From the NCBI RefSeq assembly GCF_001194135.2, contig NC_069005.1:11468913-11532912 (forward strand): 64,000 bases of DNA. The letters run 5' to 3'. This document shows, piece after piece, positions 312-35,271 of the stretch (the first letter of the stretch is position 1; each line of letters opens with the position of its first letter). The notes under the pieces were generated by a model. The model was not told the origin of the DNA, did no database searches, and saw only the letters and a program-made list of their open reading frames with translations. The DNA comes from Octopus bimaculoides (taxonomy: Eukaryota). A program made the position numbers and the translations under genes.

Positions 312-411
312 GTTATGGTCTCAGCTTATTCCTCTAGGTTATTCCTGTTCCAGAACATTTGCGGAATCATTCAAAAAATGGGTCGAAGAAAAGGGAAAAG
401 TGCTATATTGA
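312..411 (+). CDS. Terminal exon of stanniocalcin-like secreted protein, paralog A (upstream exons outside window)
   Basis: Acceptor ccaatcttttttgtctttattgtag|G (phase 2), then LWSQLIPLGYSCSRTFAESFKKWVEEKGKVLY*. Homologous to 18646-18742. Intron phase and position and W-x9-C spacing match vertebrate STC exon 4 (R|YYNRLVRSLLEC, recalled). Confidence 0.8.
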
Positions 412-535
412 AATAACAAGGATCTGTGTATTTCGTTTCTGGAATAAAAATGAAGTTCAATGTTTGCTTAATGTTTCTAATATTTGATTTCGTATACTGA
501 ACCGTGTCACCAAATAGTAGTAGTAGTAGTAGTAG
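412..535 (+). other. 3'UTR of paralog A with AATAAA (443-448), ending in (TAG)n
   Basis: Follows the stop codon; near-identical to 18743-18870. Confidence 0.7.
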
Positions 536-1489
536 AGATCGNNNNNNNNNNNNNNNNNNNNNNNNNNNNNNNNNNNNNNNNNNNNNNNNNNNNNNNNNNN
601 NNNNNNNNNNNNNNNNNNNNNNNNNNNNNNNNNNNNNNNNNNNNNNNNNNNNNNNNNNNNNNNNNNNNNNNNNNNNNNNNNNNNNNNNNNNNNNNNNNNN
701 NNNNNNNNNNNNNNNNNNNNNNNNNNNNNNNNNNNNNNNNNNNNNNNNNNNNNNNNNNNNNNNNNNNNNNNNNNNNNNNNNNNNNNNNNNNNNNNNNNNN
801 NNNNNNNNNNNNNNNNNNNNNNNNNNNNNNNNNNNNNNNNNNNNNNNNNNNNNNNNNNNNNNNNNNNNNNNNNNNNNNNNNNNNNNNNNNNNNNNNNNNN
901 NNNNNNNNNNNNNNNNNNNNNNNNNNNNNNNNNNNNNNNNNNNNNNNNNNNNNNNNNNNNNNNNNNNNNNNNNNNNNNNNNNNNNNNNNNNNNNNNNNNN
1001 NNNNNNNNNNNNNNNNNNNNNNNNNNNNNNNNNNNNNNNNNNNNNNNNNNNNNNNNNNNNNNNNNNNNNNNNNNNNNNNNNNNNNNNNNNNNNNNNNNNN
1101 NNNNNNNNNNNNNNNNNNNNNNNNNNNNNNNNNNNNNNNNNNNNNNNNNNNNNNNNNNNNNNNNNNNNNNNNNNNNNNNNNNNNNNNNNNNNNNNNNNNN
1201 NNNNNNNNNNNNNNNNNNNNNNNNNNNNNNNNNNNNNNNNNNNNNNNNNNNNNNNNNNNNNNNNNNNNNNNNNNNNNNNNNNNNNNNNNNNNNNNNNNNN
1301 NNNNNNNNNNNNNNNNNNNNNNNNNNNNNNNNNNNNNNNNNNNNNNNNNNNNNNNNNNNNNNNNNNNNNNNNNNNNNNNNNNNNNNNNNNNNNNNNNNNN
1401 NNNNNNNNNNNNNNNNNNNNNNNNNNNNNNNNNNNNNNNNCGGCTCTGCCGGCTTACAACATAATAATAATAATAATAACAACAACAAC

Positions 1490-1660
1490 AACGTTGAAGA
1501 ATACCTTAGGAATGAGAACCCAGGTTCGAAATTTCCCTAAGACACCTGATGAAGGCTGGAGTGTATATCAGCCGAAACGTTGTGTTAATAACAAACAAGA
1601 TGAGGACAAATATCTGTCAAATGTAAATAATATAATTATTTATCAGTATAAATATTTTCC
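1490..1660 (+). mobile_element. Penelope-like element terminal-repeat fragment
   Basis: Contains CTGATGA...CCGAAACG hammerhead motif typical of Penelope-like LTRs; follows (AAT/AAC)n. Confidence 0.55.
1541..1586 (+). ncRNA. Minimal type I hammerhead ribozyme motif
   Basis: Stem I (g)ACAC/GUGU(u), core CUGAUGA plus extra A, stem II GGCUG/CAGCC, GAAA, palindromic ACGU stem III, cleavage triplet GUU. Confidence 0.6.
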
Positions 1661-2059
1661 TAAATGGAGTTAACATGCTCGCTACTTGATAGAATCATTA
1701 AATGGGTGTCTCCTCCATTAATTTATTAATCGATTGATTAATTATATGTAAATATATACATAAAAGAGTAGTATAAAACAAGAATCCAGAGAATCGTGTG
1801 GCTATTACAGTAATCTCCTACGAACTCAGCTTTCGGTTCACATAGTACTTAATTACAAATTAAAGTAATTATGCCAGTACAACTTAAAATGTAGAAGATA
1901 CGAGCTATGAATTATTCGACGAAGAACATATAAGAGTTATGGGAGTTGAACGTAGATTTGCTTAACAATATGAAATCCATACGATTACAACCGCTTCACA
2001 ACTTTCTTCTGTTGTATTAATCTCAGAGTGCAGGACTTTATATGTACAAGTTAGCATTA

Positions 2060-2160
2060 GTATTGGTTTCAAATATTGCCACAAGGCTAGAAATTTCGGG
2101 GAGCGGGGGTAAGCTGATTAGATCGTCCCCGGTGCTAAACTGATACTTTTTTTATAGACC
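2060..2160 (-). mobile_element. Fragment of the abundant tRNA-derived SINE (family 1)
   Basis: Matches 3' part of the ~210-bp unit seen at 49415-49624. Confidence 0.6.
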
Positions 2161-2311
2161 ACAGGGAAATAATTACAAGGTAGCTAAATGTTGCCTAAGT
2201 GTCCCAGCATTTAATTCCGGGATAGTAAGTCGTATTCATTTTTTTAAAAATAGGAAAATTGATCAATGAGACGAACGCTCGGGATGCTGCTTAACCATTT
2301 ATATTTTGAAG

Positions 2312-2398
2312 TCTTTTACATATGTTTCGACGGATGCACTCCACAAATGTCCGACAGGATAAATTATGGTCAACAATGCATCGATCTCATCAGGAAGG
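2312..2398 (-). ncRNA. Degenerate hammerhead ribozyme motif (Penelope-type)
   Basis: Minus strand: CUGAUGA-GAUCGAUGCA...UGCAUCCGUC-GAAAC-AUAU-GUA; stem I imperfect. Confidence 0.45.
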
Positions 2399-2889
2399 AT
2401 ATAAATAACCAACTTATCAAACAGACATGTTAACAGAAATAGAAAGTCCTATAAAACGTGACGTATTTATATTCATATACACACATGCGTACACACACTC
2501 AAATATGTGACATGTAAACAGAAACATTACATACATATAAAAACACAAACGTATATAAACGCATATGCATGCGCACGCATTAATATACATACCCATACAC
2601 ATAAACATACACATATATATACATATATACATACATATATATATATATTTACATATTATATATATCATATGTAAACATATGCATAATCATATGAATATAC
2701 ATACACTCAAGTACACATACATATATATTTTCAAATACATAGGCAGAAATATATTCACACACATATGCATATATATCTACACATATACTCGAACATATTC
2801 TCGCGGCAACGACATATAAATATACTTATGCTAAAATATGCATTTATGATCACATCCTTATTCACATAAGGAAATGGTCATTTACATAC

Positions 2890-4000
2890 ATATGTATGTT
2901 CATATCCCAAAACATCGATAGACCTTAATACATAATTGCATACTTATACACACACTTAAGCACATATACATTATTGTTCATTAAAAAAATATTTACATAC
3001 GAACAGGGGCCTCTAGGAATTTAAAATGACGTTATCCAAACAAACTAAATATTGTGAGAGAAGGAGAAGATGTGTAGAAAGGTAGGGAGCGGGAAAGAAT
3101 GGAATGATAAAACAAAGTAAAAGAGAGAGTGTGGGGGAGAGGAAGGGCAAATTGTAAATATAAAATATGCATGGAAAGAAGGGAAAGAAGGGGAGAGGGG
3201 GAAAATTATGGGAAGTAAGATGGAAGGAAAAATAAAAGAAATTTTCAGAGATTATTATGTTATGCGAAGAAATTATTTGAAAGAACAAAACAAGTGTTTA
3301 TTCAAAGAATACATTTGGAAGCTCACTCTCACTCTCATAAGCATATATAACTACACTACTTCAAATAAACAGATACACATATATGATTTAATAGACGTTT
3401 ACGATCTCCCACTTATAGATATAAGCAAACGTTCACACACATACTGAAGAGAACATATATCCCAAAACATCGACAGACACAAACACACTATAATAAACCC
3501 ATACACATACTTACTAAGCACATATACATTATTGTACACACCGAAAATATACATACGCACGATAGCAAAAACGGGTATATATGCATATATATAAATATGC
3601 ATATATATATATATATATGCATATATATATATATATATATATATATACGTATATGGAAAGCCAGGTAGTAAGGTAACTCTAGAAATCTAAAATGGTTTTA
3701 AGGAAATTAATTAGATTGAATGAGAAAAGGAGTAAACGAATAGAAAGATATGGAAATAAACGAAGAAGAAAGAGTGAATAGGAACAGGTGAATTGTATAC
3801 ATGAAAATGATAAAAAGAAAAGTAAAGAAGGGAGAGTTAAGGTTATGGAAAGTAAGGTGGAAGAATAAAGAAAGGAAAATTTGATATTATTTATTAAGAA
3901 TAAAGAAAATAAAATGATATTATTAGATTATGGGTGGATATTCTTTGGAAGAACTAACAGTGTTTCTTTCTAATGAATACATTTGTAAACTCTCTCTGTA
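2890..4000. repeat. Diverged tandem duplication (~0.6 kb unit) upstream of paralog B
   Basis: Shared blocks: atatcccaaaacatcga (~2900/~3455), taagcacatatacattattgt, ctctag(g/a)aat(t/c)taaaatg (3011/3677), gaagggagag, gaatacatttg. Confidence 0.65.
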
Positions 4001-4580
4001 AATGTGTCCACCAATTTAAGCTGAGAGAATAAAATACTGCTCTTCCGTGCACAAAGGACTGAATGATTTCTCTTTATCATAAAGAAAAGATCTAGAAAGG
4101 ATTTTCCATCCTAAAGAAAAAGATGCATTAGAGGCATTGAAGTCTCAGATTAGTTTACTGAGTCCCGTAGAGTTCTGCTTACGATTGTATTTAAAGGTAG
4201 AGGAGTGGTTAGCCAGAAGTAGACCACACACACACACACACACACATACACTTTGAATTTAAAAACAGCTGAATGTCAGTTGATGCTTTCACGATTTTTC
4301 TCCATCCCCTTCCTTTCTATCGCTGTCTGTCTATCTTTCTCTTAATTTCTCTCTCTCTCTCTCTCTCTCTTACCCTTCCAGAGTAGTGTGTATGTGTATG
4401 TAGAAGCAGACGACACACGCAAACACATACACACATGCACACACACACACACACTCATCCGAAATACTAACCAGTTGACGTCAGCTATAGCGAACGATAA
4501 AAACAATATATTGAAGAAAGAAGACATTGACAGCAGTGCATTATATTGGCATTTAAGTGGACAGAAAGAGAAAGGAAAAC

Positions 4581-4797
4581 ATGTGGAAGTACTTCATAGC
4601 TCTTTTGATATTATCGCTGTTTAAAATCGACGATGTTGCCAATCAAGACAATTTACCAAAGCCAGGCACTAAACCAGATAAAGGTAAACCAGATGACAGT
4701 AAACCAGATGAAGGTAAACCAGACAAAGCTTCTAATTTAAATGCAGCTGATCCAAGCAATCCAAGGCATCCACCAGGTCCTATTTCAACGTCAATTG
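4581..4797 (+). CDS. Exon 1 of stanniocalcin-like paralog B: signal peptide plus K-P-D repeat region
   Basis: ATG MWKYFIALLILSLFKIDDVANQ (hydrophobic signal), then KPGTKPDKGKPDDSKPDEGKPDKAS...PISTSI; donor ATTG|GTTAGT, phase 1, matches exon 2 acceptor phase. Confidence 0.8.
4671..4731 (+). repeat. Coding 15-bp tandem repeat (AAACCAGATRAAGGT-like x4) encoding KPDxx
   Basis: aaaccagataaaggt aaaccagatgacagt aaaccagatgaaggt aaaccagacaaagct. Confidence 0.85.
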
Positions 4798-6374
4798 GTT
4801 AGTTCCTTGATGTGTTGGAATGTGTGGGAATTTTTTTTTTATTAACCATTTTACTCTTTTAACTACAGAAATCAGACATGTTTACTCAGAATATTATCAT
4901 CCTTAACTGCGAGTGGCAGATTTATGTATCAATTTATCTCTTGCTTGAAGAATGTCATGGCTGAAGCTATTTTTCTCAAGTTTATCACGGCGATGTGATT
5001 TGCAGAAATACTCACCATTTTGAACAGCATTGTTGCAATCAGTGGTTGACGTATCTCATGTATCAAGCATTCAAACATCTTCATTCATGAATCCAGTTCA
5101 TAATTATCTTAGCAGAGCAAAGAGAATTACATAGTGCTATAAACGAGAAAGGGTTTGTTTCATTATAGAGATATAGCATTGCAACACTTGCGCCTTCTTT
5201 CATATTAATATGCCATTTATTAACACCATTCAGAAGTTTGAGTCTTCGCCTCTGCTGACTGTGTTGCATTGTCACTGCCTTTATTCTTTGTCATAGATCA
5301 CCGAATGTGTATTCATGACTAATGTTCTCGCATTGATGACTTTTAATCGCTGTTTTATAGAAACACAACGGTAACTTGGTTATCCCCTACATTACAGCCA
5401 TTTCTCCAATGAATTACAGTAATGTGATTTAAATATACTTAAAATATGTGACGATTCTGTTCTGATGACAATTGGTGCTGTCTTTTCAGTCCCAATGTTT
5501 ACGATTATCAGATGCTGAAGTCCATCGTGCATCAGAAGGAGGAAATCTCGCAGCCTGGCTGCTTTCATTCATCAAAGATTTCTCCCCACAAGATCTCCCA
5601 CAAGATCTCGCGTTTCGCATTTCTACTGATTTCCTTAAACCTCTGCCTTCCTACCGCTTGTTGTTTCTCTTCATTTGGTCCAGCTGTTCAGATCTTTATA
5701 TCTCAATTGCCCATGCTATTCTGACACGTCATTGCCTTGTTTTTATCGGTCCTTGTGCAACCCTATATTCTACTTATATATTGTCGTCTAATCAATTCAA
5801 AATTCTTCAGGCGATATGATATGAATAGTCATTTAACCACAAACAAAAAGGACAAAATTCCGCTTAATCGAAACTTATAAAGGAAAAAACAAATACGTAC
5901 AAATTCTCGTTCATGAAGAAATGTTAGCTAATTAGCAGTAATAGAGTGCTTGACTTTACGGAAAATTTGATGCTAAGTATTTTAATTAGGTCCCATAATC
6001 CATTGTTCCAGCTATTTGGTACATAAATGCACAACACAGAGTGCTCGACACTGTGGACGAATCAAAATCTTTTTTTTTTTTTACAAGAGATCTCTTCAAA
6101 TATATAGTGGAAAACAAGACTATATATACAGCCAGCGTCCACTAAATTCAAACATGGCAGATGCATGTGCAAGCGTCGAAGACGGAGGTTGTTTACTAAC
6201 GGAGACAGCAACTGAATACCACCTGAGGGAATACACCTATATCCCATTATACAGCTAAATTTTTGCATAATCAAATACTTGTATATATGAAGAACTAGGA
6301 TGAATAGAAACATTTCTCGTGATTAAAAACCAACTGTTCAACCTTATTCCTTCCTGTTGACTCTTCCTGATTCA

Positions 6375-6411
<37 letters not shown>

Positions 6412-6414
6412 GTT

Positions 6415-7447
6415 TTTCGCAAATAGAGTTACCATTTTTCAATCAGTTTTTTGAATGTTATGATTTTTTTCCTTTTGGCATATGGTAGCCGTTACTTTTT
6501 GCTTCCTTTAGAAGTAAATTACGCGTAGTTTTGTTTACAGCTGTTAGTTCTGTGTCAATTTTAATATGGAGTGCAAAAACGATCATTTTTGCCATATTTT
6601 GCTTTTTTCATTTCCGGAAAGGCAAGAAAGCTGCTGAAGCTCACAAAGAGATAAGAGAACTTTATGTCTCTGATTGCTTAACAGAACGTACATATCAGAA
6701 ATGGTTTTCAGAATTCCGCTCTGGAGATTTTTCACTCAAAGATGATAACGTTCTGTTCGACATACTGAAGTTGATGACGACCGAATGAAAGCCATAGTTA
6801 AAACTTATTGTCATATAATCGTGCGAGAGATTGCGGAGTGGTTAAATGTATCACATACAATCAATTGAAAATCACTTAAAATTTCTTGGACTCGTTAAGA
6901 AGATCGATATTTGATTTCCAAATAAATTGAAAGAGATTCACTTAACACAACAAATCAATATTTGTGATATGTATCTCAAACGCAATGAAATCGATTTTTT
7001 TGAAACGAATCATCGCTGGTGAGGAACAATGGATTTTCTATAATAACATCAATCGAAAACGATCATGGACCAAGCGTAATGAACCAGCACAAACCACATC
7101 GAAAGCTGAATTGCATCAAAAAAAGGTCATGCTGTCATTTGGTGGGATTACAAAGGTGTTGTGTATTTTTGAGCTGCTTCCAAGGAACCAAACAATCAAT
7201 TCAGATGCTTACTGGCAACAACTAATGAAACGAGAGGAAGTAATCAAAGAAAAACGGCCAGAATTGGCAAATCGTAAAGGAATCGTGTTCCACCATGACA
7301 ACGCTAGACCACACACGTCTTAGCTAACTCGTGAAAAATTATCGGAGTTTGGTTGGGAAGTGATGTAACATCCACCATATAGCCATGATCTTGCACCATC
7401 AGATTACCATTTATTTGGAAGTTTGCAAAATACTTTGAATGGTAAAG
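6415..7447 (+). mobile_element. mariner (DD34D-type) transposase pseudogene, truncated by gap
   Basis: EQWIFYNNINRKRSW, KKVMLS, VFHHDNARPHTS, HPPYSHDLAPSDYHLF motifs with frameshifts and stops. Confidence 0.9.
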
Positions 7448-8609
7448 NNNNNNNNNNNNNNNNNNNNNNNNNNNNNNNNNNNNNNNNNNNNNNNNNNNNN
7501 NNNNNNNNNNNNNNNNNNNNNNNNNNNNNNNNNNNNNNNNNNNNNNNNNNNNNNNNNNNNNNNNNNNNNNNNNNNNNNNNNNNNNNNNNNNNNNNNNNNN
7601 NNNNNNNNNNNNNNNNNNNNNNNNNNNNNNNNNNNNNNNNNNNNNNNNNNNNNNNNNNNNNNNNNNNNNNNNNNNNNNNNNNNNNNNNNNNNNNNNNNNN
7701 NNNNNNNNNNNNNNNNNNNNNNNNNNNNNNNNNNNNNNNNNNNNNNNNNNNNNNNNNNNNNNNNNNNNNNNNNNNNNNNNNNNNNNNNNNNNNNNNNNNN
7801 NNNNNNNNNNNNNNNNNNNNNNNNNNNNNNNNNNNNNNNNNNNNNNNNNNNNNNNNNNNNNNNNNNNNNNNNNNNNNNNNNNNNNNNNNNNNNNNNNNNN
7901 NNNNNNNNNNNNNNNNNNNNNNNNNNNNNNNNNNNNNNNNNNNNNNNNNNNNNNNNNNNNNNNNNNNNNNNNNNNNNNNNNNNNNNNNNNNNNNNNNNNN
8001 NTATATATATATATATATATATATATAATGATTGCTTCATTTTGACAGATGATAGCCGTCCCATCAACACACTCACCACACCCTCTCAGAAACATTCCGT
8101 TGCTGAGCCCTCAGATCACTTAAGACCAGCTACTGACTGATGGTGTTTGAAATACAAGTGACAGATATTTAAAACACAACTGACAGATGTAGAAGTTTCT
8201 TCTACATCTTTACCGGTTGGAATCTGATTCTGAAAGATTCTTTTTGTGAATTAGCATATGTCTTTTAAAACCAGATATTGTCTTTGCAAATTTTGTGACA
8301 TATGACACAAAGTCGTAAGAGACGGTTATGGTTCAAAACGTTTACCTACTTGGGCATTTTAATTCATGTGACGTCAGATGATTCACATATCCTGCTTTTG
8401 ACATCAGAACACCACTACCAACACTACCAACAACAGCAACAATAGCAGCATCAGCAGTATCAGCAGCAAAAGCAACATTATCAACAATAAAAAAACGATA
8501 CATAACAAAGTCCATAACAATAACAATAACAACATCTGCAGTGACATCTACAACAACAACGGCCATAATCACACATTTACTAAGAGCTTTTTGTTTCTCT
8601 ATTTCTTAG

Positions 8610-8758
8610 GTTCTCAACAACGAGTAGCTGAATGCTATTCTCTTGTTCGAAAGTTGGACTGCAAATTCTACACATGTTTGAGTGAGAGATTAATTTGCCC
8701 TCAAACACTATTAGCGAAGGAAAAGCCTAATGTTTATTGTAAAGGACCCGATGAAAAG
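8610..8758 (+). CDS. Exon 2 of stanniocalcin-like paralog B (Cys-rich)
   Basis: Acceptor ttgtttctctatttcttag|GT (phase 1): GSQQRVAECYSLVRKLDCKFYTCLSERLICPQTLLAKEKPNVYCKGPDEK|GTAAAA (phase 0). C-x8-C-x4-C-L spacing as in STC1 CLNSALQVGCGAFACL; 149 nt versus ~143 nt recalled for STC exon 2. Confidence 0.85.
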
Positions 8759-8850
8759 GTAAAATGATTTTTTATGCTTTTTATGGTGTGGCAATTTAAA
8801 GTTCTGATTGAATGAGCGAAGAAATAGAATGACAGAATGAGTAAAACAAG

Positions 8851-8910
<60 letters not shown>

Positions 8911-9438
8911 TAAAAGATACGAGTTTTCATCAGGGTGACTTAAATTAATAGATATGCACTCTGAGTGCTCAATTTGGTGTGTCATCAAAATTCCAGTTTG
9001 AACTGCTGTTGAACATGCGATTTTGTTACTGCCTTGCTGAAACGGCTAGAATTTATTATTAATTATTGATAATATTTTCGGGATAATTTTCGAATTGAAA
9101 CGCCGGCAGTTTTTATTTACTGCTGACAAGGAGAAGCGCTTGCGTGGTAGATTTGAAAAATTAGAATGTATAAGCACGGGCGTATACTGGATTTCCTCGT
9201 GTATATATGTTTAATGTAGGTGTATCTGCTGAAGAAGACTTCGCCTAGCAAATTATTTTATTTGCTAAAGTAAGTCTGAAACCATGGTCCAGGAGTTAGA
9301 TGGTAAATGTTTTTATTTTTCATTCCTATCGACGTTTTATCCCTAATAGTGGTTTGAAACATAGCTGTTCTTTCTAGCGTGCAAGGAATCCTATGATGGA
9401 TCCCTCTTATATGTTTAAATGTACACTGTATTTATATG

Positions 9439-9509
<71 letters not shown>

Positions 9510-9635
9510 TAGATCCACATATCTTCATAATATTGTTTCATTAGGTCAATGCTGATGAACTAGACTACAACATGGCGTTGTTGAAGAGTTACAATTTTGA
9601 GCAGATGCATATTAAACCAACAATATTTTCAAACC

Positions 9636-10018
9636 GTGGAGGCGCAATGGTCCAGTGGTTAGGGCAGCGGACTCGCGGTCATAGGATCGCGGTTTCGATT
9701 CGCAGACCGGGCGTTGTGAGTGTTTATTGAGCGAAAACATCTAAAGCTCCACGAGGCTCCGGCAGAGGTTAGTGGCGAACCCTGCTGTACTCTTTCACCA
9801 CAACCTTCTCTCTCTCTTTCTTCCTGTTTCTGTTGTACCTGTATTTCAAAGGGTCAGCTTTGTCACGTTGAATATCCCCGAGGTCTACATTAATGGTACA
9901 CATGTCTGTGGAGTGCTCAGCCACTTGCACGTTAATTTCACGAGCAGGCTGTTCCGTTGATCGAATCAACTGGAACCCTCGACGTCGTAAGCGACGGAGT
10001 GCCAACAACAACAACAAT
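9636..10018 (+). mobile_element. tRNA-derived SINE (family 2) with (ACA)n tail
   Basis: A/B-box head ggcgcaatggtccagtggttag...ggtttcgattc; body shared with 31070-31375, 42130-42400 and 52751-53050; ends gccaacaacaacaac. Confidence 0.8.
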
Positions 10019-10304
10019 TTTAAAACCATATAAATCTATATAAAAAATATAAATGTACATAAAAATACATGCGTATATAAATGTATATAAAAATGTATGC
10101 GCAATTGAGTATAAATATTATTAAAGTCTAAACATTAAAAAGCATCTGACGATGGTTTCACGGACATTACTGCCTCCACAATGTAATCAAAATAGATAAG
10201 CATACTGGCAATAATTCCACTCTTCGGAGATGCATGGAGTTATTATATACGTGTTAAAAACGAATGGTATATATAATAAGATGATATTAATTAAAATATT
10301 AAAA

Positions 10305-10874
10305 TGTATACTGTGTATACTGGGGAAAAGGTTCTTCTCTCTATCTGGTGGGATTGCAAAGGAGTAATTCACTTTCAATTGTTACCACCTAATGCAACAA
10401 TCAATGCTCAAGTCTACTGTCAGCAATTAGAGCGTTTGAACCAAGCTTTGAAGAAAAAAAAGGCTTGCTTTAGTGAATCGAAAAGGAGTGATGTTTCATC
10501 AGGACAATGCGCGAGCCCACACTGCAAAGATCACATCACAGAACATCGAAGAGCTTGGTTGGCACAAAATTCCTCATCCACCTTATTCTCCCGACATTGC
10601 TCTTTCAGACTACCATTTGTTTCATAGTTTACAAGATCATTTGGGGGACATAACTTTCGCAAGCTAGGAGGAGGTCGAAACCAACATTTAAGAGTTCTTC
10701 GCCTTGAAACCAAAAGAGTTTTACATTGATGGAATTAAAAAGCTTGTAAATAGATGGAAGGAAATCATAGATAATCAAGGAAAGTACATTGATGATTAAA
10801 TTTCAATTACATATAACATCTGATCACTTGTTTTCTTTATTCAAAATTCGGACAAAACTTACGAGATGACCTGA
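10305..10874 (+). mobile_element. mariner 3' half with right TIR
   Basis: WWDCKGVIHF, FHQDNARAHT, HPPYSPDIALSDYHLF; ends ...acgagatgacctga|TA. Confidence 0.9.
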
Positions 10875-11176
10875 TATTTGGTCGATAAAATAAACTGCAC
10901 TTCAAATACTATAGTTGATGGCATTGATTAACGCTCTACCACAAGATTATTGGTCTTGTGTCTAAGTTGGAAGTCATTCTAACAATTAATAACCTTTTTA
11001 TTTTTTTATTTTTTAACCTCCTACCAACTTGCCCAAATCAGCCAATCTGCCAAAGGGTTTAATCTGATTTCTTATGCAATTTCTGAAAAACAATTTTGTA
11101 ATCTTCAATTATTGTAATCGATGAAAAAATATTCGATGTAAATTGGGTTAATAGATTCATTATTATTATTAATTAT

Positions 11177-11213
<37 letters not shown>

Positions 11214-12360
11214 GCGCGCGCACGCACACACACACNNNNNNNNNNNNNNNNNNNNNNNNNNNNNNNNNNNNNNNNNNNNNNNNNNNNNNNNNNNNNNNNN
11301 NNNNNNNNNNNNNNNNNNNNNNNNNNNNNNNNNNNNNNNNNNNNNNNNNNNNNNNNNNNNNNNNNNNNNNNNNNNNNNNNNNNNNNNNNNNNNNNNNNNN
11401 NNNNNNNNNNNNNNNNNNNNNNNNNNNNNNNNNNNNNNNNNNNNNNNNNNNNNNNNNNNNNNNNNNNNNNNNNNNNNNNNNNNNNNNNNNNNNNNNNNNN
11501 NNNNNNNNNNNNNNNNNNNNNNNNNNNNNNNNNNNNNNNNNNNNNNNNNNNNNNNNNNNNNNNNNNNNNNNNNNNNNNNNNNNNNNNNNNNNNNNNNNNN
11601 NNNNNNNNNNNNNNNNNNNNNNNNNNNNNNNNNNNNNNNNNNNNNNNNNNNNNNNNNNNNNNNNNNNNNNNNNNNNNNNNNNNNNNNNNNNNNNNNNNNN
11701 NNNNNNNNNNNNNNNTTGTTATTGTTATTGGCGTTATGTCACTCCAGTCCAGCTGTGATCAAACAAACACCTTTATGGCGTTCGAGTAGTCGATTGGACG
11801 ACATGTCTTGACAAATAGTTAAATTGTTTCGGATATCTAGATGGATATTTAATTCGATGACACACAATAAAGCACCACCTTCCACATGCAGTGACCCGAT
11901 GAATCGTTGTTCGGCAATTTGTGCTCGTTAGTGTCCAGATGTTTCCCTGTACACTCGCAGATTCTGTACACTTGCAGATGTCCACAACAGTGTCAGGTGA
12001 GACGAGACAGATTTGGTCAGAATGTCGAAACTGACAAGTGCAAGGTAGTTTTTACATCGATGTTACTTCCGCTTGATTACAAACGAAATTTAAGACATTA
12101 TCATCGTAAGTTCTCCGTAAAACAAACGATGCTGAGTTAATCTTTATAAACATTTTACTAATTATTATCAACATATTACTAAATTAATAAGTATACTAAT
12201 GATAATAATTGCATGCGTTTAAAACATGTCAATTGTAATTATTGGCTTATATTAAAAAAGAAGGCATTTACTGGAGGCTATACCGCGCTTTCAAACTCCA
12301 CTCCACAAGCTGATGGCAACCTGATGTGATTTGCGAATAATCTTACCATAGTAAAATGTA

Positions 12361-12584
12361 CGGAATATGAGACAACTGAAAAGTTCCTGGATTTAAGTGT
12401 ATCGCGAAAGACCTAGTTGGAAGCCCAACCTTCCGAGTTCTTTTACATAAGTTAGAAAAACTGAAGGACTGCTGCAGTAAGTGTGTGAATGTGAGAGGAG
12501 AAAATGTAGTATAAAATCATAATTAACTGATCCTCCAGTATTTTCTTTTACCCGAAAGCCAGGAACTTCTCAGTATCCCACCGT
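12361..12584. mobile_element. mariner-derived MITE-like element
   Basis: Terminal inverted sequences actgaaaagttcctgg ... ccaggaacttctcagt. Confidence 0.6.
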
Positions 12585-12619
12585 GTGTATGTATATATAT
12601 ATATATATGTATATATAGT

Positions 12620-14550
12620 GAGAATTTTCAAAAGAAAAACAAAAGACGAAGACGGGTGTGTAAACAACAAACAGATATATTAGTTTAACACTCGGGAAGT
12701 GAAAAAGTCTTTTGCGTTTCGAGCCTATGCTCTTCGACAGAAATAAACAGGGAGAGAAAATAAAAAAGGTTTTGTCGCTATATAAAATACTATATAACCT
12801 TTATATATTACATAATCTATATGTATATAGATTAAAGATACTGTTGTAATAAAAGTCACAAAAAGCACAAGTCACCTGGACAAAATATTAATTTATTTCG
12901 CTATTAATCAAGCTGTTACAACGAACAAGCCGGTTTAGTAACTGCGGGAAAATACACATTTAGAAAAAGACAGAAAGAAACACAAGGAAGATAATTAACC
13001 TCACAGTAAATATAACCAGTGTCTTACAAGTGTTACAATTACATAAACCACACTGAAATGGTTTATGATGTGTCCGGTAGTTTATCATTAATTTCTGATA
13101 AGGTGCATTTTCTAAAATGCAGACATAAAGGAAAAATCTTGACCCTGGTATTTACTCAGTCGCTGGAGAGTCTTAAGCTTTTTAAACGATACAACAGTTT
13201 TTCTAGTGCGCATATGGGATATGTTTTGATCTGTTAATATAAGGGTAGTCATAGAAGAAAATCTTCCATTTTGGGGTTTCCAATGGTGGTCGACAAATCA
13301 CACTGAAAAAAAAAACAACTGTGAAATGAAAATAGTAAAAAAATGGAAATGTGATTTACAGTTTTTCTGATCCTCTTCTAATAGACGCTTTCGCTTGAAG
13401 TGGTATGTTTTGGGATCTGATGAATTTATAATTCTTTTCCGCAAGCGGATCTGATTTTTGATTCGTTAAAATTCTGGTCACGTTTTCTTTCCGTGGTCAA
13501 GCTTGTCGTTCTGCTTGCTTGGTTTCCTTGTGGATACGGTCATAAGTCGTTCTGGCTGGTTGGTTCTCTTAAAGAGTCATTTCGTTGTATTCGTTGAAGT
13601 TCGGCTTTGATTGGTCTTCAGTTAGGTGATGTCAGCAACTGGTGTTTGTAGAATTTCATTGGACTGGAGGTGGGTGACGTCAGCAGTTGATGTTTGTATG
13701 GTTATTTGGAGTTGCGGTTTCGGAACCCAGGTGGAAGATTCTTACTGAAGTTTTCAGAAAAAATTTTTTTCTTGTTCCTGGTTTCTTTGTTAGTCTTTTT
13801 TCTTTTCTTTTTAATGCTTTTTCTTCTTTCCAAAGGATATTCAGCTGTGGTTTATATTTTTTAATCAGTATGTTTTCCTAATTGAAACGGAATTGGGTTG
13901 AACTGTTTCCAGTGCATCGATAGAGAGGGAAGATTTGGTATTTAGGGTTTATGTCTACGGGGCATTGATGTAGGTAATTGCTTACAGGAATTTTCCTAGT
14001 GGTGAGGTCCCAGATTTGTTGCCTGTGTACCGTAAGTCTATCCCTCAAAGTGAAGCTGGTTTGACCAATGTAATAACCACCACAACCTCCATATTTAAGA
14101 ACATAAATTAAGTTCTTCGAAGCACAGGTGAAGTCATATTTTATGGCAAAAGTTTGACCTGACTTACATTTGTATGTGGAGCTCTGTAAGAGGAAGATGC
14201 AAGTTCTGCAGTTAGGGCGGTTGCATTTTTGACTTTTGGGGTTGTATTTTTGGTGGGTAATTTGGCACTGGTGAGTAATTTTTCTAGGGATTGCGGTTGT
14301 CTCTTGCTTTTAATAATCCTATGTGTTTCTAGTGCCTTTTTCATTCGTGGGTCCTTCATAAGGAGGGATATGTTTTAGTGGGTGATGTTGTATGCTTCCA
14401 TGTTTCTTGGATTGTTGATACGTAAGATAGAGTTTTAAGTGTCATGGTGTCTTCTTGTTTTCCGTAACTCTTGGATGTATATCATTTTTGCACGTTCTAT
14501 TCCATTTTTGATTAGACTGGTTGGGTATTTTCTATCTAGTAATGTATTTT
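12620..14550 (-). mobile_element. Penelope-like retroelement remnant (RT C-terminal region plus GIY-YIG endonuclease, terminal repeat)
   Basis: Minus strand: IIKSKRQPQSLEKLLTSAK and FTCASKNLIYVLKYGGCGGYYIGQTSFTLRDRLTVHRQQI (GIY-YIG); hammerhead-like terminal motif at ~12708-12745. Confidence 0.8.
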
Positions 14551-14551
14551 T

Positions 14552-14778
14552 TAAAGAATTTGACCTCTATGAAAGTTCGATAGATCTGTCATTTTAATGA
14601 ATTTTAATTACCTTTTTCTAATGATATCTGAAAATAAACAGCAATTTTAGCAAAATATATTAAGCAACACTAATAACAAATCAAAAGACACAAGAATAAA
14701 GCTTTTGACGGTTTTATATATATTTCAAAATTATGATGCTATGATGTTAGCTGTTTCTATTCTTTTCTCCAACACCTG
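14552..14778 (-). mobile_element. Inverted 5' fragment of a Tc1-like element
   Basis: Reverse complement matches 14815-15040 including TIR-like end, 5'UTR and ATGACAGATCTATCG start; ends CTG|TA. Confidence 0.85.
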
Positions 14779-14814
14779 TATATATACCTCTCTCTATATA
14801 TATGCATATACATA

Positions 14815-16048
14815 CAGGGGTTGGACAAAATAATAGAAGCACTTAGTATCATAGAATCATAATTTTGAAATATCTATAAAACCGTCAAAAGCTTGTTTAT
14901 TTTTATGCTTTTTGATTTATTATTAGTGTTGCTTAATATCTTTTGCTAAAATTGCTGTTTCTTTTCAGATATCATTAGAAAAAGGTAATTAAAATTCATT
15001 AAAATGACAGATCTATCGGACTTTCATACAGGTCAAATACTTGGTACTCGTATGGCAGGTGCTAACGTAACAAAAACAACCGAAATGTTTGATGTATCAA
15101 GAAGTACTGTCTCGAGAGTAATGACAACCTTTAAGAAAGAAGGAAAAACTTTCTTGTCGAAACAAAACTCTGGAAGAGAACCAAAATTTTCAGATAAGAA
15201 CCGTCGGACTCTTACGCGAATTGTTAGAAAAGTACAGCTCCCAAAATTACGGCAGAGCTTAATGACCACTTCGAGAACCCAGTTTCCACAAAAACTGTTA
15301 GCTACACGAAGCCAGATTTCACAGGAGTGCTACAATCAGAAAATCACGACTTTTGAAAACAAACGTTGCAAAGCATTTAGAGTGGAGTAAAAACCTGCAG
15401 AATTGGTCCCAGAGCAGTAGAAGTATGTTATTTTCTCAGAAGAGTCATCCTTTACCATATTTCCGACCACCGGCCGAGTATATGTGTGGAGATAAGCAAA
15501 AGAAGCATTTGACCCAGCCTACCTTATTCCAACCACTAAACATGGAGGATAATCTGTGATGATCTGGAGGTATATATCTTGGAAATCCACCTGCCCAATA
15601 GTTTTCCTTCATGGCAGAATTAATAGTCAAGACTATTTAAGCATTTTATATGATCAAATTCGTCCGATGGTTTCCTATCTGTTTCCGGAGGGAAACGCAA
15701 TCTTTCAGGATGATAATGCACCAATTCACAACGCTAAAGTTGTTACTGAATGGCACGAGAAACATTCTAGTGAAGTTGAACATCTTATCTGGCCACCACA
15801 GTCTCCAGATCTCAATATTATTGAACATTTATGGTACATTTTAGAAAAACAAGTAAGGAGTCAATATCCTCCACCATCATCACTACAAGACCTGGAGATT
15901 GTATTAGCTGAAGAATGGACAAAACTTTGTTTGGGAACAATTCAAACTTTGTACGAGTCCATACCTCGTAGAATTCAAGCTGTAATTACTGCGAAAGGCG
16001 GTCCTACCTCATATTAAATTAAATTTGTCTTAAATTTTAAGGTGTTTC
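14815..16048 (+). mobile_element. Tc1-like (DD34E-type) element with frameshifted transposase, right TIR entering gap
   Basis: TA|CAGGGGTTGGACAAAA TIR; MTDLSDFHTGQILG...SGREPKFS; FQDDNAPIH, WPPQSPDLNIIEHLW, KGGPTSY*. Confidence 0.92.
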
Positions 16049-16206
16049 NNNNNNNNNNNNNNNNNNNNNNNNNNNNNNNNNNNNNNNNNNNNNNNNNNNN
16101 NNNNNNNNNNNNNNNNNNNNNNNNNNNNNNNNNNNNNNNNNNNNNNNNNNNNNNNNNNNNNNNNNNNNNNNNNNNNNNNNNNNNNNNNNNNNNNNNNNNN
16201 NNNNNN

Positions 16207-16850
16207 ATATATATACATGCTTTGGTTTTTCTCAGGCGAGATAAATTTCTGCCAGGATGAGATGGTGAAGACACAGAACTACCGTTGTCTAGAAGTGTCC
16301 CCAAAACATGTGCCCGCATGGCCACAGACTCAACATGGAGGCCTACACTTAATGCCTGGAGGAGGTAGTGCTGCTCTGGTTCAACAGGTGGCTGCTTGAA
16401 GACCCTATGTCTGGCAATGAGAATCTGCACCATGCCACACAACCAAGATAACCCAGTCATGGCTGTCAGACAATTTCTCCGACCACATCACCCCTAACAT
16501 GTGTCTACCTAAGACCCGACTACAACCCTCTTGATAATTATGTGTCGGGTGCAGTTGCGTAAGAGACTGTCAAAACTTCTTGTCATACTAAAGATGAAAC
16601 GAAAGCAAGGATTATGGCAGCATTCACCAACTTAAACAATGACACCGTTCAGAAGAGTTGCAGGATATTCCGAAGTCGTCTGGATGCCACGGTGGAAGCC
16701 AATGGCAATTTAATTGAATAGATTTACTCTTTAGTATTCCAAGATATTTTTAATGTAATTTTGGTAAACGTATCTGCCAAAATGTGATGTCAGCGTTATT
16801 TTCCATTTTTGCGTAAATTAGAAGGCAATTTATTCACCGACCGCACGCTG
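16207..16850 (+). mobile_element. maT/DD37D-like Tc1-mariner remnant
   Basis: Homologous to 58167-59048 (cccagtcatggctgtcagacaa, catcacccctaacat, gaagccaatggcaattt); right end ...gctg|TA. Confidence 0.7.
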
Positions 16851-18645
16851 TACATATATATATATGCATATGCAACTCGGGTGTTAGGAAATACCTACAT
16901 TGCTAGAAATAAGAGCTAAACCACTCTAAAGCTATACTTAATGCGCATATACAGTAATGGGGACCTTAATCGTTCTAAAAGTGCAGATCGAGGATTCTTA
17001 ATATTGACGCGACAGTTTAGGCAATTTCCTTTGCTTCGTCAGTTAAGACAGCCAACTTCGGCTCCTTCTGGATTGCCATTAGTATGTATGCTTTCGTCAT
17101 TCAAATAATTGGATGATTTAACGATTCGTTAATGTGTTTATACAAAATTAATATAAACAGCAGTTTGCAATGTTTCACGAAAAAGGAAAACTACAAATGT
17201 CACTGAATTCGACTAGGGTGTTAGGAAACACCTACATTGCTTGAAATAAGAACTGAACCGCTCTAAAAATGTGACAAAGGGTGCAAGGAATACCAAAATT
17301 GCTAGAAATAAGAGTCAAAGAACCCTTTAGCCACAAAAGCACACTTTTATTTACTGACAGACGAGAGGACCTCCCCACTGCAATTGAGTGACATTAAATT
17401 GGCATGGCAGTTTTGCATGAAATTTAATGCCCATCAGCATTGTTCAGAGTGGCGAAGGTGATTTCTACTCTGTCAGTAGATTGATAAATTTTACCATAAA
17501 TATCAGTGGCTAATTTCGCAAAGTGGTAATGTGAAAAGTATAAAATAAGTAAGGTGACTAGACGCAATTCAAGACCAAAAAGGAAATAATTCAGCGTCAC
17601 TAAAACGACGAAGGGTGCAGAAATAAGAGTCAAAGAACTCATCGACGGCCGTTTCACGGGTACAATGAATGTATGAATAGCGTTTTAAGTATTCAAAATA
17701 CATAAACATAATGCCCTTCTCATCAGATTGGCTTCCTTTGTGATGAAATCCTACATGGTTATAATTCGATAGATTAAAAAATGATGATATCCCTTACCTG
17801 AATTTAGCCGAATCTATATATTTAATTTATCTACCAATTGATCTACCTTATTTGCCCCTGAATTTTTAAATTTTGAACTCTCATCCGACATTTCGTATAA
17901 ACATCAAATTCTGAAGCGATTCGACCAATTCCTTTTGGATGCCCTTTCCTCGAATTTTTATCTCTTTATTTGTCACTCCTACACTCGGTACCTGAACCCA
18001 ACGTACATGATCATAGTTTTCACATATGACTTTTACATGTAATCTTCTTTACTGATTTATAAATTTATATATATANNNNNNNNNNNNNNNNNNNNNNNNN
18101 NNNNNNNNNNNNNNNNNNNNNNNNNNNNNNNNNNNNNNNNNNNNNNNNNNNNNNNNNNNNNNNNNNNNNNNNNNNNNNNNNNNNNNNNNNNNNNNNNNNN
18201 NNNNNNNNNNNNNNNNNNNNNNNNNNNNNNNNNNNNNNNNNNNNNNNNNNNNNNNNNNNNNNNNNNNNNNNNNNNNNNNNNNNNNNNNNNNNNNNNNNNN
18301 NNNNNNNNNNNNNNNNNNNNNNNNNNNNNNNNNNNNNNNNNNNNNNNNNNNNNNNNNNNNNNNNNNNNNNNNNNNNNNNNNNNNNNNNNNNNNNNNNNNN
18401 NNNNNNNNNNNNNNNNNNNNNNNNNNNNNNNNNNNNNNNNNNNNNNNNNNNNNNNNNNNNNNNNNNNNNNNNNNNNNNNNNNNNNNNNNNNNNNNNNNNN
18501 NNNNNNNNNNNNNNNNNNNNNNNNNNNNNNNNNNNNNNNNNNNNNNNNNNNNNNNNNNAAAATAACCATCTAAGGGATAGAAGTATCCATTACACTACCG
18601 GTATATTACTTATATTTAATCCAATCTTTTTTATCTTTATTGAAG

Positions 18646-18742
18646 GCTATGGGGTAATATTTCTGATGTAGCCGCAAACTGTTCAACAGACACTTCGGGA
18701 AAATTCCATAAATGGCTCAAGGAACAGCAAAGTTTGCCATAA
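18646..18742 (+). CDS. Terminal exon of stanniocalcin-like paralog B
   Basis: Acceptor ccaatcttttttatctttattgaag|G (phase 2): LWGNISDVAANCSTDTSGKFHKWLKEQQSLP*; aligns with 312-411 and with STC YYNRLVRSLLECDEDT. Assignment to the same gene as exons 1-2 is inferred from order and strand. Confidence 0.8.
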
Positions 18743-18857
18743 ATGAACTAACAAGTATCTGTGTATTTCGTTTCTGAAATAGAAATAAAGTTCAATGATT
18801 GCTTAATGTTTCTAATATTTGATTTAGTTACTGAACCGTGTCACCAAATAGTAGTAA

Positions 18858-18898
<41 letters not shown>

Positions 18899-18900
18899 CA
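18743..18900 (+). other. 3'UTR of paralog B with AATAAA (18784-18789) and (TAG)n
   Basis: About 7 differences in ~109 nt versus the paralog A 3'UTR. Confidence 0.7.
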
Positions 18901-19282
18901 GGTGTGGGTAAAAGTAGGTATACAGTTGCTTGACCAAGCATTCACTCTATGTCCTCAGAAATCATAAAAACTCGGCTTCCGATGAACTCAGTATCTCCAG
19001 TAATCGTTAGATTTAAAAATGATGATTCCCTTTACCTGAATTTAGACGAATCTGTATATAATTAATTTATCTACCAATTGATCTACCTTATTTGCCCCTA
19101 AATTTTTAAATTTTGAACTCTCATCTGACATTTCGTATAAACATCAAATTCTTAAGCGATTCAAACAGTTCCTTTTGGAAGCCCTTACTTCGAATTTGGG
19201 TTAAAAATTAAGAGAAATTGAGAAAAGAAAAGTACATTCCATTTATATTAAGCAACTATAAACCTACTTTTCCCCCACTCTT

Positions 19283-33312: not shown

Positions 33313-34880
33313 GGTGTCAAGATCTTGCCAGCCATGTGCGAACTTGCCAGTCTGCCGTCCATAGCAGAGCTCACCAAGCTCACCAAATCAAGCTCCCTAG
33401 CCAGTGGCAAGGCTCCGGGAAAAGACGGCATCCCTTCAGAGATCATCAAAGCCGGCAAAAACACTGCTCTGCTTCAGAACCTTCATGAGCTTCTGTGTCA
33501 GTGGTGAGAAGAGGGTACAGTCTCTCAGGATATGCGGGATGCTAACATCATTACGCTTTACAAAAACAAAGGTGACCGTGGCGATTGCAACAATTACCGC
33601 GGAATATCTCTTCTCAGCACTGTTGGGAAGACCTTTGCCCGCGTAATCCTGTCCAGGCTACATCTGCTTTCTTCTCGAATTTATCCAGAATCGCAGTGTG
33701 GCTTTAGAAGAAGCATATCAACTATTGACATGATATTCTCCATACTCCAGCTTCAGAAGAAGTCCAGAGAGCAGAAAATGCCATAATATATGGCCTTCAT
33801 TGATCTGACAAAGGCCTTTGACTTGGTCAGTAGAAAAGCCTCTTCCTCCTGCTTCAAAATATTGGATGTCCACCAAAGCTGCTGAGGATCATCGAATCTT
33901 TCCATGATGATATGCAAGGCACCATACAGCACATTGGTTCAACATCAGCCGCCTTCTAAATAAAGAACGGGGTAAAGCAAGGCTGTATCTTTGCTCCTAC
34001 ATTATTTGGTATCTTCTTCTCGCTGCTGTTGTCACATGCCTTCGAGACATCAGATGATGGAGTGTTTCTTCACAGTAGAAGTGACGGGAAACTGTTCAAT
34101 CTCCCGCGTGTGCGTGCCAAGACCAAAATCAGAAACGTCCTGATCAAGATGTTCTTCGCTGATGATGTTGCTCTGGAATCACACTCAGAAGAAGTCCTGC
34201 AAAGGCTCATCAACTGCTTTGAGCAAGCATGTAGAGACTTTGGCTTAGTTATCAGCCTCAAGAAGACCAACATCATGGGTCAGGCTACATCGCACATCCC
34301 AAACATACATATTGGAGACCACAGACTGCGAGAAGTAGAGAAGTTTACTTATCTTGGCTCTAACCTACAACCTATCCCTTGATGCCGAGCTCAATATTCA
34401 CATTGGCAAGGCAGCTGCTGCGGTGATAGTCCGACTCTCCAAGCGGGTATGGGACAACAACAAACTGATGAAGACCACAAAAATGAAGCTTTACCAGGCA
34501 TGTGTACTTAACACTCTATTGCATGGCAGTGAAACCTGGACGCTATACACACGCCAAGAGCGTCGCCTAAATATCTTTCACTTGCGCTGCCTCCAGAAAA
34601 TCCTTGGCATCAAATGGCAGGATCGTGCCCCAACAAAGGTGTCTCTCAAGCAAGCAGGAATACCAAGCATGTTTGCATCCTCACACAAAGACGTATGAGA
34701 TGGCTTGGACATGTTAGTCGCATGGAAGATGGCAGAATCTCCAAGGACATACTCTAGGGAGAGCTTGCTAGGGGCACTAGGTCTGTTAGAAGACCATTCT
34801 TACGGTACAAGGATGTCTGCAAAAGGGTCATGAAAGGCCTGCGACATCAGTATTAGGAACTGGGAAGCGTTTGCCAGCAA
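33313..34880 (+). mobile_element. RTE-clade LINE reverse transcriptase pseudogene
   Basis: KAPGKDGIP, DANIITLYKNKGDRGDCNNYRGISLLS, YPESQCGFR, FFADDVAL, EKFTYLGS, LLHGSETW; stops and frameshifts. Confidence 0.95.
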
Positions 34881-34912: not shown

Positions 34913-35271
34913 CAGTATCTCACAGAAGTATGTACACCCCTAAAATATTTCAGGAAAATTGCCATCACTCTGATAATATCAAGGGAAATCAAACAAAATT
35001 TATGTTGATTAAAAGTATATTATACATGCTAACATTACACAAATTTGGAACATAAAGCAATAAACATTTTTAAAGATATAAACGAAATATTTATTTTCAA
35101 ACGTTACAAAAATATGTACACCCTAAATGAGAATTTGCCATATTCATTATTTCTTCCAGATATTGTTGATAATTTCAATTCTAATAAATTATTTATTTTC
35201 AAACGTTACAAAAATATGTACACCCTAAATGAGAATTTGCCATATTCATTATTTCTTCCAGATATTGTTGA
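34913..35271 (+). mobile_element. Left end (TIR plus 5' region) of a Tc1 element
   Basis: TA|CAGTATCTCACAGAAGTATGTACACCCC; same family as the right TIR at 23020-23113. Confidence 0.8.

Follow-up and report, generated by a model that had tools for sequence, protein, structure and literature searches.

Stanniocalcins (STCs) are secreted hormones with no known receptor. STC1 and STC2 bind and inhibit pappalysins (PMC7136389), and STC genes have four exons whose boundaries are conserved between STC1 and STC2 (PMC8806499, PMC7136389). Invertebrate STCs have been recognised by a signal peptide, a length of 150-300 aa, ten conserved cysteines (Cys) and 13-37% identity, and both an eleventh Cys and the glycosylation site vary among them (PMC5654410). 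A recent preprint describes "doppelganger toxins mimicking stanniocalcin (SF5)" in the posterior salivary glands of Octopus bimaculoides and H. maculosa (bioRxiv 10.64898/2026.02.02.703354, Feb 2026). Here we analyse a 64,000-nt stretch of the O. bimaculoides genome (the window; RefSeq assembly GCF_001194135.2, contig NC_069005.1, positions 11,468,913 to 11,532,912 of the forward strand; CM046625.1 of GCA_001194135.2) together with the corresponding locus of Octopus vulgaris. We consider it probable, with good confidence, that window positions 4581-18742 (+) constitute one four-exon gene for a secreted STC-type precursor of ~230 aa. On its sequence, we file this gene as a divergent, previously unannotated putative member of the STC family that narrowly misses the full-length profile threshold.

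A preliminary description of the window, made from the letters alone, had placed four exon-like pieces on the + strand. All four were confirmed, each with canonical AG/GT splice sites and none touching a gap. The coding part of exon 1 (4581-4797) starts with an ATG at 4581 and ends in phase 1 (..ATTG/GT). It encodes a signal peptide (MWKYFIALLILSLFKIDDVA..) followed by a low-complexity spacer rich in Pro, Lys and Asp. By inspection, the signal peptide comprises MWK, an 11-residue hydrophobic core and a polar stretch, all kept in both species. The spacer (window 4640-4790) is made of short KPD/GKPD-like repeats, as is its O. vulgaris counterpart. Indels of 10 and 12 residues separate the two, and splicing at an alternative phase-1 donor after 4713 would shorten the O. 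bimaculoides spacer. The spacer sequence contained no dibasic cleavage site ahead of the STC core. Exon 2 (8610-8758, +) spans 149 nt, is entered in phase 1 and left in phase 0 (AG/..AAG/GT), and carries the first five cysteines (C1-C5) in the pattern C-x8-C-x4-C-x6-C-x13-C. A regular expression for this motif also matches low-complexity DNA elsewhere, so that the motif alone does not exceed chance; its significance comes from the orthologue described below.

The other two pieces are homologous terminal exons. In terminal exon B, which is exon 4 of the gene (coding part 18646-18742, +), one base completes a phase-2 codon, followed by LWGNISDVAANCSTDTSGKFHKWLKEQQSLP and the stop TAA at 18740-18742. 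This exon supplies the tenth Cys, together with an N-x-S sequon kept in O. vulgaris, and its 3' untranslated region (3'UTR; 18743-18896, +) includes AATAAA at 18784-18789 and a (TAG)n microsatellite at 18858-18896. Terminal exon A (coding part 312-411, +) has the same organisation: a single base completing a phase-2 codon precedes LWSQLIPLGYSCSRTFAESFKKWVEEKGKVLY, and the stop TGA is at 409-411. Its 3'UTR (412-535, +) has AATAAA at 443-448 and (TAG)n at 515-535, and continues into a gap at 542-1440. The sole frame open in both exons is the one that the preliminary description had used, with two bases supplied by the preceding exon. In this frame the two peptides share L-W-x9-C and F-x-K-W, and end within one codon of each other.

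The piece missing from the window was located through the orthologue. A HMMER search of 1.84 billion representative proteins matched only two octopus proteins, both of them stubs as described below. One of these, CAI9741012.1, led to the O. vulgaris locus (L002; OX597838.1, 20,228 nt), which is free of gaps. Exon 1 has its orthologue at L002 10001-10225 (phase 1; the spacer at 10080-10215), and exon 2 at L002 12061-12210 (phase 1 to 0), with 69% protein identity and five of five Cys kept. Further downstream, two blocks are collinear between the species. Window 10950-11235 corresponds to L002 16038-16318, window 11716-12015 corresponds to L002 16726-17026, and between them the window has an assembly gap (11236-11715). 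At this position O. vulgaris has a 227-nt exon (L002 16457-16683) with the borders ttttcag/..gtaagt, which is open from phase 0 only and ends in phase 2. This exon 3 encodes 75 residues with four Cys (C6-C9) spaced x15/x13/x6, as in STC1 and STC2. The counterpart of terminal exon B (L002 20009-20105) joins it in frame, and O. vulgaris exons 1-4 together give an uninterrupted protein of 231 aa with ten Cys.

By collinearity, the gap at 11236-11715 (+) is where exon 3 of O. bimaculoides is expected. The O. bimaculoides assembly breaks off at a (CT)n(CA)n microsatellite, and in O. vulgaris the exon comes just after this repeat. The readable window contained no match to exon 3, and we infer from the orthologue that O. 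bimaculoides retains it inside this gap. The gene would have four coding exons with intron phases 1, 0 and 2, and the preliminary description, which had proposed an STC-type gene with these phases and exon 3 missing, was borne out on this point by the 227-nt exon of phase 0 to 2 at the gap position.

An ab initio search of the window for exon 3 (AG..GT, entered in phase 0 and left in phase 2, with two or more Cys) gave 11932-11996, with its strong donor, as the best candidate; it was rejected, the expected position of exon 3 being the gap. This 65-nt candidate is open in both species but shows no coding signature (6 of its 7 substitutions are non-synonymous), and its inclusion would put exon 4 out of frame. 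The candidate lies within the conserved block of intron 3 (11716-12015, +), which is 91% identical to O. vulgaris and ends at a consensus-like donor, CAG/GTGAGA (11996/11997); similarity to L002 16726-17026 ceases abruptly just past this donor. The candidate may represent an alternative exon or have a regulatory role.

Current annotation of the gene is short in both species. The peptide encoded by exons 1 and 2 has 100% identity to XP_052832673.1 ("uncharacterized protein LOC128250785 isoform X1", 124 aa), which consists of exon 1, exon 2 and two codons past the exon-2 donor (AAG/GTAAAATGA, giving K V K stop). Isoform X2 (96 aa) uses the alternative donor after 4713, and its spacer is shorter by 28 residues. 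Both models terminate with the same donor read-through at 8759-8767 (+). CAI9741012.1 (75 aa) corresponds to exon 1 alone, again with a donor read-through (..LG stop; L002 10001-10228). Both reference annotations are therefore cut short, each at a different exon. The RefSeq protein probably stopped in intron 2 because exon 3 lies hidden in the gap at 11236-11715, and we read its V-K-stop end as an annotation artefact of that gap.

The RefSeq models could instead be taken at face value. The locus would then be a two-exon gene for a small five-Cys secreted peptide of 124 or 96 aa, with the exon-3-like and terminal-exon-like sequences lying outside the mRNA. XP_052832673.1 and isoform X2 are the sole public models, intron 2 of O. 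bimaculoides and of O. vulgaris has a stop codon after its first 6 nt (GTAAAATGA and GTGAAATGA), and neither exon 3 nor exon 4 occurs in any database protein. However, this stop falls within the normal donor consensus, and the resulting peptide would have an odd number of Cys. An exon inside an assembly gap is unusable by an annotation pipeline, and the O. vulgaris model, cut even earlier, indicates that the short models reflect poor annotation. In O. vulgaris, the phases of exons 3 and 4 fit exactly, the two exons bring the STC pattern to its full ten Cys, and most of the STC profile signal described below resides in them. We regard a two-exon gene as improbable. On the four-exon reading, LOC128250785 and CAI9741012.1 would be stubs of an STC-family gene, and an example of how a gap-hidden exon can yield a false short "uncharacterized protein".

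Membership in the STC family was assessed by profile, pairwise and spacing comparisons. Among 24,736 Pfam families, Stanniocalcin (PF03298; gathering cut-off 23 bits) was the best family for every query that included exon 3. The full-length O. vulgaris protein scored 21.2 bits (E = 2e-4), exons 3+4 24.0 bits (E = 2.9e-5), exon 3 alone 20.6 bits (E = 3.1e-4) and exons 2+3 18.9 bits (E = 0.001). Adding exon 4 to exon 3 raised the score from 20.6 to 24.0 bits. A hybrid query in which O. vulgaris exon 3 was flanked by exons 2 and 4 of O. bimaculoides scored 19.8 bits (E = 5.6e-4), and the hybrid in which terminal exon A replaced exon 4 scored 22.6 bits (E = 7.7e-5); relative to the O. vulgaris protein with its own exon 4, substitution of terminal exon A took the score from 21.2 to 22.6 bits. 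The profile check proposed in the preliminary description was consequently divided, with the full-length protein short of 23 bits and exons 3+4 above it with Stanniocalcin as top family. The readable exons of the window by themselves (exons 1+2, exon 2 and each terminal exon) gave no Stanniocalcin match at E <= 10.

In controls (one reversed sequence, five shuffles with fixed Cys and four free shuffles), none of the ten gave a Stanniocalcin match at E <= 10. As the match is lost in Cys-fixed shuffles, residues other than Cys contribute to it (e.g. Q-[KRE]-E-C-Y-L). When the spliced O. vulgaris protein was compared with the PDB, the only matches at E < 10 were three STC2 sequences. Pairwise BLASTP against STC2 gave E = 4e-6 with ~20% identity over the best segment, and Smith-Waterman z-scores were 5.4 and 6.7, with none of 2000 shuffles scoring as high. 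An hhalign comparison of shallow alignments returned E = 0.0012 and a probability of 19%, with C1-C3 and C6-C9 in register. The truncated RefSeq protein, searched against the PDB by phmmer, gave a low-complexity match only.

Cys spacings were compared with human STC2, taken from the alignment of PDB 7y5q_C, and with a human STC1 sequence (136.6 bits against PDB STC2). From C1-C2 to C9-C10, the spacings are 8, 4, 6, 13, 16, 15, 13, 6 and 39 in O. vulgaris, and 8, 4, 5, 8, 23, 15, 13, 6 and 34 in STC2 and this STC1. Five of nine are identical to STC2, and the span from C4 to C6 differs by two residues. At C8, octopus Q-K-E-C-Y-L faces Q-R-E-C-Y-L in STC2. Of the ten Cys of the O. vulgaris orthologue, the window shows six, in exons 2 and 4; the remaining four correspond to the gap. 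With a signal peptide (by inspection) and 231 aa, the O. vulgaris protein also falls within the range of recognised invertebrate STCs.

Intron positions would agree as well on the values presumed for the vertebrate genes, namely intron phases of 1, 0 and 2 and exon sizes of 143 and 212 bp, none of which a literature search returned. With these sizes, intron 2 would precede C6 by 10 residues, and the last intron C10 by 11, in octopus and vertebrate genes alike.

Could the likeness to STC be convergent or due to chance, the gene encoding an unrelated octopod-specific Cys-rich secreted protein? The ~20% identity to STC2 over the best segment, the sub-threshold full-length Pfam score and the low hhalign probability from shallow alignments would all be expected of such a protein, as would the differing C3-C4, C4-C5, C5-C6 and C9-C10 spacings. 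Against this stand the first rank of Stanniocalcin among all Pfam families, STC2 chains as the sole PDB matches, the loss of the match in Cys-fixed shuffles, and the five identical spacings within a Cys count equal to that of the STC core. The number of coding exons is also that of STC genes, the phases 1, 0 and 2 match those presumed for the vertebrate genes, and recognised invertebrate STCs are equally divergent (PMC5654410). We consider convergence or chance very improbable, and descent from the STC family remains our preferred account of this protein.

One alignment in the preliminary description did not hold as firmly. LWGNISDVAANC had been matched residue for residue to YYNRLVRSLLEC; this match was not established, and both MAFFT and phmmer favour a later segment of STC2. 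The alignment of LWGNISDVAANC to YYNRLVRSLLEC nevertheless remains plausible, and is favoured on two grounds: the last Cys must partner C9, and on the presumed human exon sizes introns 2 and 3 would hold matching positions relative to C6 and C10.

Terminal exon A shows that a local duplication has copied at least part of the gene. At the DNA level, its homology to terminal exon B (blastn E = 3e-56) extends from ~25 nt before the acceptor through the 3'UTR to the (TAG)n microsatellite, and its acceptor, frame, Cys, stop and AATAAA are all intact. Exons 1-3 of a second copy would lie past the start of the window and the run of 4812 N that immediately precedes position 1 in the O. bimaculoides locus record (L001), which overlaps the window by 18,767 bases with 0 mismatches. 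Searches for further paralogous exons (tblastn and a Cys-pattern regular expression) found none in window 19-64 kb, L001 or L002, nor was a paralogous annotated protein found in the searched databases. In O. vulgaris, neither a second copy nor a counterpart of terminal exon A was found over 10 kb of sequence ahead of the gene. Terminal exon A likely belongs to a second gene, presumably an upstream paralogue; that it is an orphan fragment is a serious possibility to which we lean less. Of the tandem pair in the preliminary description, the second intact homologous terminal exon stands, and the rest of the copy would lie beyond the 4812-N gap, leaving the tandem array unsupported as it was put forward.

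We then compared the rates at which coding and non-coding parts have diverged between O. bimaculoides and O. vulgaris; gaps were excluded and the samples are small. Identity between species was 79% for exon 1, 83% for exon 2 and 75% for the coding part of exon 4, compared to 86-92% for flanking introns. Pooled, exons diverged by 20.6% and adjoining introns by 11.6% (Fisher p = 1.5e-4). Relative to synonymous sites, the ratio of non-synonymous to synonymous change (dN/dS) was 0.65 (range 0.61-0.68), and dN was ~1.7 times the intron distance. Despite ~20% exon divergence, all splice sites, reading frames and six of six checkable Cys are kept in both species.

The terminal exons show the same contrast. 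Terminal exons A and B are 58% identical in their coding parts and 93% in their 3'UTRs; the corresponding values against O. vulgaris are 66% and 88% for A, and 75% and 86% for B. The 3'UTR regions compared were window 412-514 and 18743-18846 and L002 20106-20210, each copy being followed by the (TAG)n microsatellite. By its coding part, copy A appears to predate the species split, although its UTR has hardly changed. The conservation of the 3'UTR could reflect either constraint or homogenisation by gene conversion. A conserved signal peptide and UTR, a fast mature part and local duplication are, in these small samples, the pattern of secreted effector families.

Fast change may also signal decay, in which case the gene would be an STC duplicate under relaxed constraint and terminal exon A the orphan of a partial duplication. 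The dN/dS of 0.65 and the lower conservation of coding sequence than of introns would fit, and no transcripts or full-length annotations were found in the databases searched. The A-B homology that begins only ~25 nt before the acceptor and the absence of a second copy from the 10 kb that precede the O. vulgaris gene point the same way. Neutral exons, however, would match the introns rather than diverge twice as fast (p = 1.5e-4). The main gene keeps its splice sites, open frames and checkable Cys in both species after ~20% divergence, and none of the acceptor, frame, Cys, stop and AATAAA has been lost from terminal exon A. Decay seems to us hardly likely.

The predicted precursor would consist of a signal peptide, a variable Pro/Lys/Asp-rich spacer that the alternative donor shortens, and a ten-Cys STC core of ~155 aa. 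Pairing of its Cys as mapped for STC1 would give the core five disulfides (C1-C3, C2-C5, C4-C7, C6-C8 and C9-C10), and it may adopt the helical STC fold. Extracellular action through partner binding may be expected, as for STC1 and STC2 with pappalysin metalloproteinases.

The search of 1.84 billion proteins returned no relatives outside Octopus, which fits a fast-evolving lineage-specific copy rather than a conserved orthologue. Together with the rate of change and the duplication, this Octopus-only range in the databases argues against a conserved endogenous STC. Our tentative suggestion, to which we give somewhat less than even credence, is that the gene is not the housekeeping STC orthologue and instead encodes a lineage-restricted, rapidly diversifying secreted effector, possibly a salivary 'doppelganger' STC mimic. 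A more specific proposal, which we consider rather unlikely as a whole, is an octopod-specific, locally duplicated STC-derived family recruited as a secreted effector (e.g. one that imitates prey STC in saliva or venom). Diversifying selection would act on the mature-peptide exons of this family, as their faster change than that of their own introns, and coding parts of 58% identity beside 3'UTRs of 93% between paralogues, would suggest. The family would be unseen in both annotations, and distinct from endogenous STC and possibly from SF5. The gene could be one of the SF5 salivary proteins.

Several observations weigh against these conclusions. Exon 3 of O. bimaculoides itself falls in unread gap sequence, and the splicing of exons 2, 3 and 4 to one another is deduced from frames, splice signals and the orthologue. 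Proteins containing exon 3 or exon 4 were found in neither the 5.8-billion nor the 1.84-billion protein set, and the full-length form is backed by no public annotation or assembled transcript; the two terminal-exon peptides had no match among the 5.8 billion proteins, and a profile of the whole family returned from this set only three truncated models. The full-length Pfam score is 1.8 bits under the gathering cut-off, and exon 2 contributes nothing to it. The alignment of the last Cys with C10 of STC is ambiguous, and the AlphaFold2 model of the truncated RefSeq protein, which has a helix at residues 3-14, is of low confidence (mean predicted local distance difference test score 52.8; predicted template modelling score 0.24). 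The C3-C4 stretch (LSERLI or LNERLT) lacks an N-x-T sequon, and no Cys follows C10; because both features vary among invertebrate STCs, their absence does not exclude membership. The effector or venom view rests on the evolutionary pattern and on one preprint known by description (bioRxiv 10.64898/2026.02.02.703354).

Order and orientation across the gaps at 7448-8001, 11236-11715 and 16049-16206 are collinear with the ungapped O. vulgaris locus. A fourth gap (18076-18558) is part of an insertion (window ~16937-18591) that O. vulgaris lacks. Terminal exon B is flanked by a repeat of ~143-200 nt, 93% identical between its copies (17815-17957 and 19055-19197), the upstream copy of which lies in this 1.65-kb stretch absent from O. 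vulgaris. The stretch at 16937-18591 may be either a true insertion or a local assembly duplication.

The introns are full of degraded DNA transposons (window 6531-7447, 10304-10800 and 15004-16017), of which two copies are of the mariner type (Pfam Transposase_1, E = 8e-18 and 3e-19) and one is Tc1-like (helix-turn-helix plus DDE_3, E = 4e-13). The gap at 7448-8001 starts within the first mariner copy. A tRNA-like repeat of the short interspersed element type occurs in intron 2 (9640-10010), at ~52750-52900 and, inverted, in intron 1 of O. vulgaris (L002 11532-11704). ARAGORN found no tRNA in the window, and Rfam gave one weak tRNA match at 59889-59959 (31 bits); within the range of the gene, tRNA and Rfam scans found nothing. 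Downstream, reverse-transcriptase fragments (RVT_1, E = 5e-6 and 3e-8) of an element resembling a long interspersed element lie at 33400-34700 (+) and 35199-36317 (-). A minus-strand open reading frame beside the gap at 35272-36084 opens with a SAP-motif-like sequence (ELKKYLRLYGQYVTGRKADLTERL).

If this account is correct, a minimal STC core of ten Cys whose coding sequence outpaces its own introns, and which has been duplicated locally, offers a tractable natural experiment on the recruitment and diversification of a conserved hormone scaffold. In venom gene families such as snake PLA2 and conotoxins, mature-peptide coding sequence outpaces introns and UTRs, the signal peptide and UTRs are conserved, and genes are duplicated locally. 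The octopus gene resembles these families in pattern only, on the basis of two species and two paralogous terminal exons, and with a dN/dS between orthologues below 1.

Compared to STC1 and STC2 (PF03298; 7Y5Q, 8A7D, 8A7E and 8HGH), the octopus protein is likewise secreted with a signal peptide and has ten core Cys and four coding exons. It shares the C1-C2 (x8), C2-C3 (x4), C6-C7 (x15), C7-C8 (x13) and C8-C9 (x6) spacings and Q-x-E-C-Y-L at C8. It differs in its low identity (~20%), a full-length Pfam score just below the cut-off, a longer C4-C5 spacing (x13 versus x8), a shorter C5-C6 spacing (x16 versus x23) and five additional residues between C9 and C10. It lacks the eleventh Cys through which STC1 dimerises, the extra Cys by which STC2 bonds covalently to PAPP-A, and the vertebrate N-x-T sequon between C3 and C4. 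In place of the C-terminal tail of STC1 and STC2, it ends ~19 residues after C10 and, as a further difference, a Pro/Lys/Asp-rich spacer of ~50 aa follows the signal peptide.

Against invertebrate and protist STCs, including that of the mollusc Lottia, the comparison is by description (Roch and Sherwood 2011, PMC5654410). The octopus protein shows the features by which those proteins were recognised and, like the invertebrate STCs, has a longer C4-C5 interval than the vertebrate proteins. Its insert at this position (PQTLLAKGQRQVY) differs from their clearly hydrophobic six-residue stretch.

The closest described proteins in an octopus are those of SF5, known here by description (bioRxiv 10.64898/2026.02.02.703354). 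The preliminary description knew of no such expansion in a cephalopod, a statement that is unsupported as worded given the STC-like salivary proteins in this preprint. In the preprint's available text, the STC domain of SF5 spans signal peptide to C-terminus, unlike the octopus gene product with its long spacer, and this text does not mention gene structure, an assembly gap, local duplication or exons that evolve faster than introns. Sequences in the preprint were clustered in a CLANS map at BLASTp 1e-3. Should the gene simply be SF5, our finding would shrink to a note on gene structure and annotation; if it is indeed a salivary "doppelganger", its structure, synteny and selection would provide a genomic handle on a new toxin class. 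The pairwise BLASTP value for human STC2 (E = 4e-6) is at a level that the SF5 BLASTp screen, as described, could have caught. By the same description, SF5 and the product of this gene are alike in coming from the same species, in being secreted and STC-like, and in carrying the STC cysteines.

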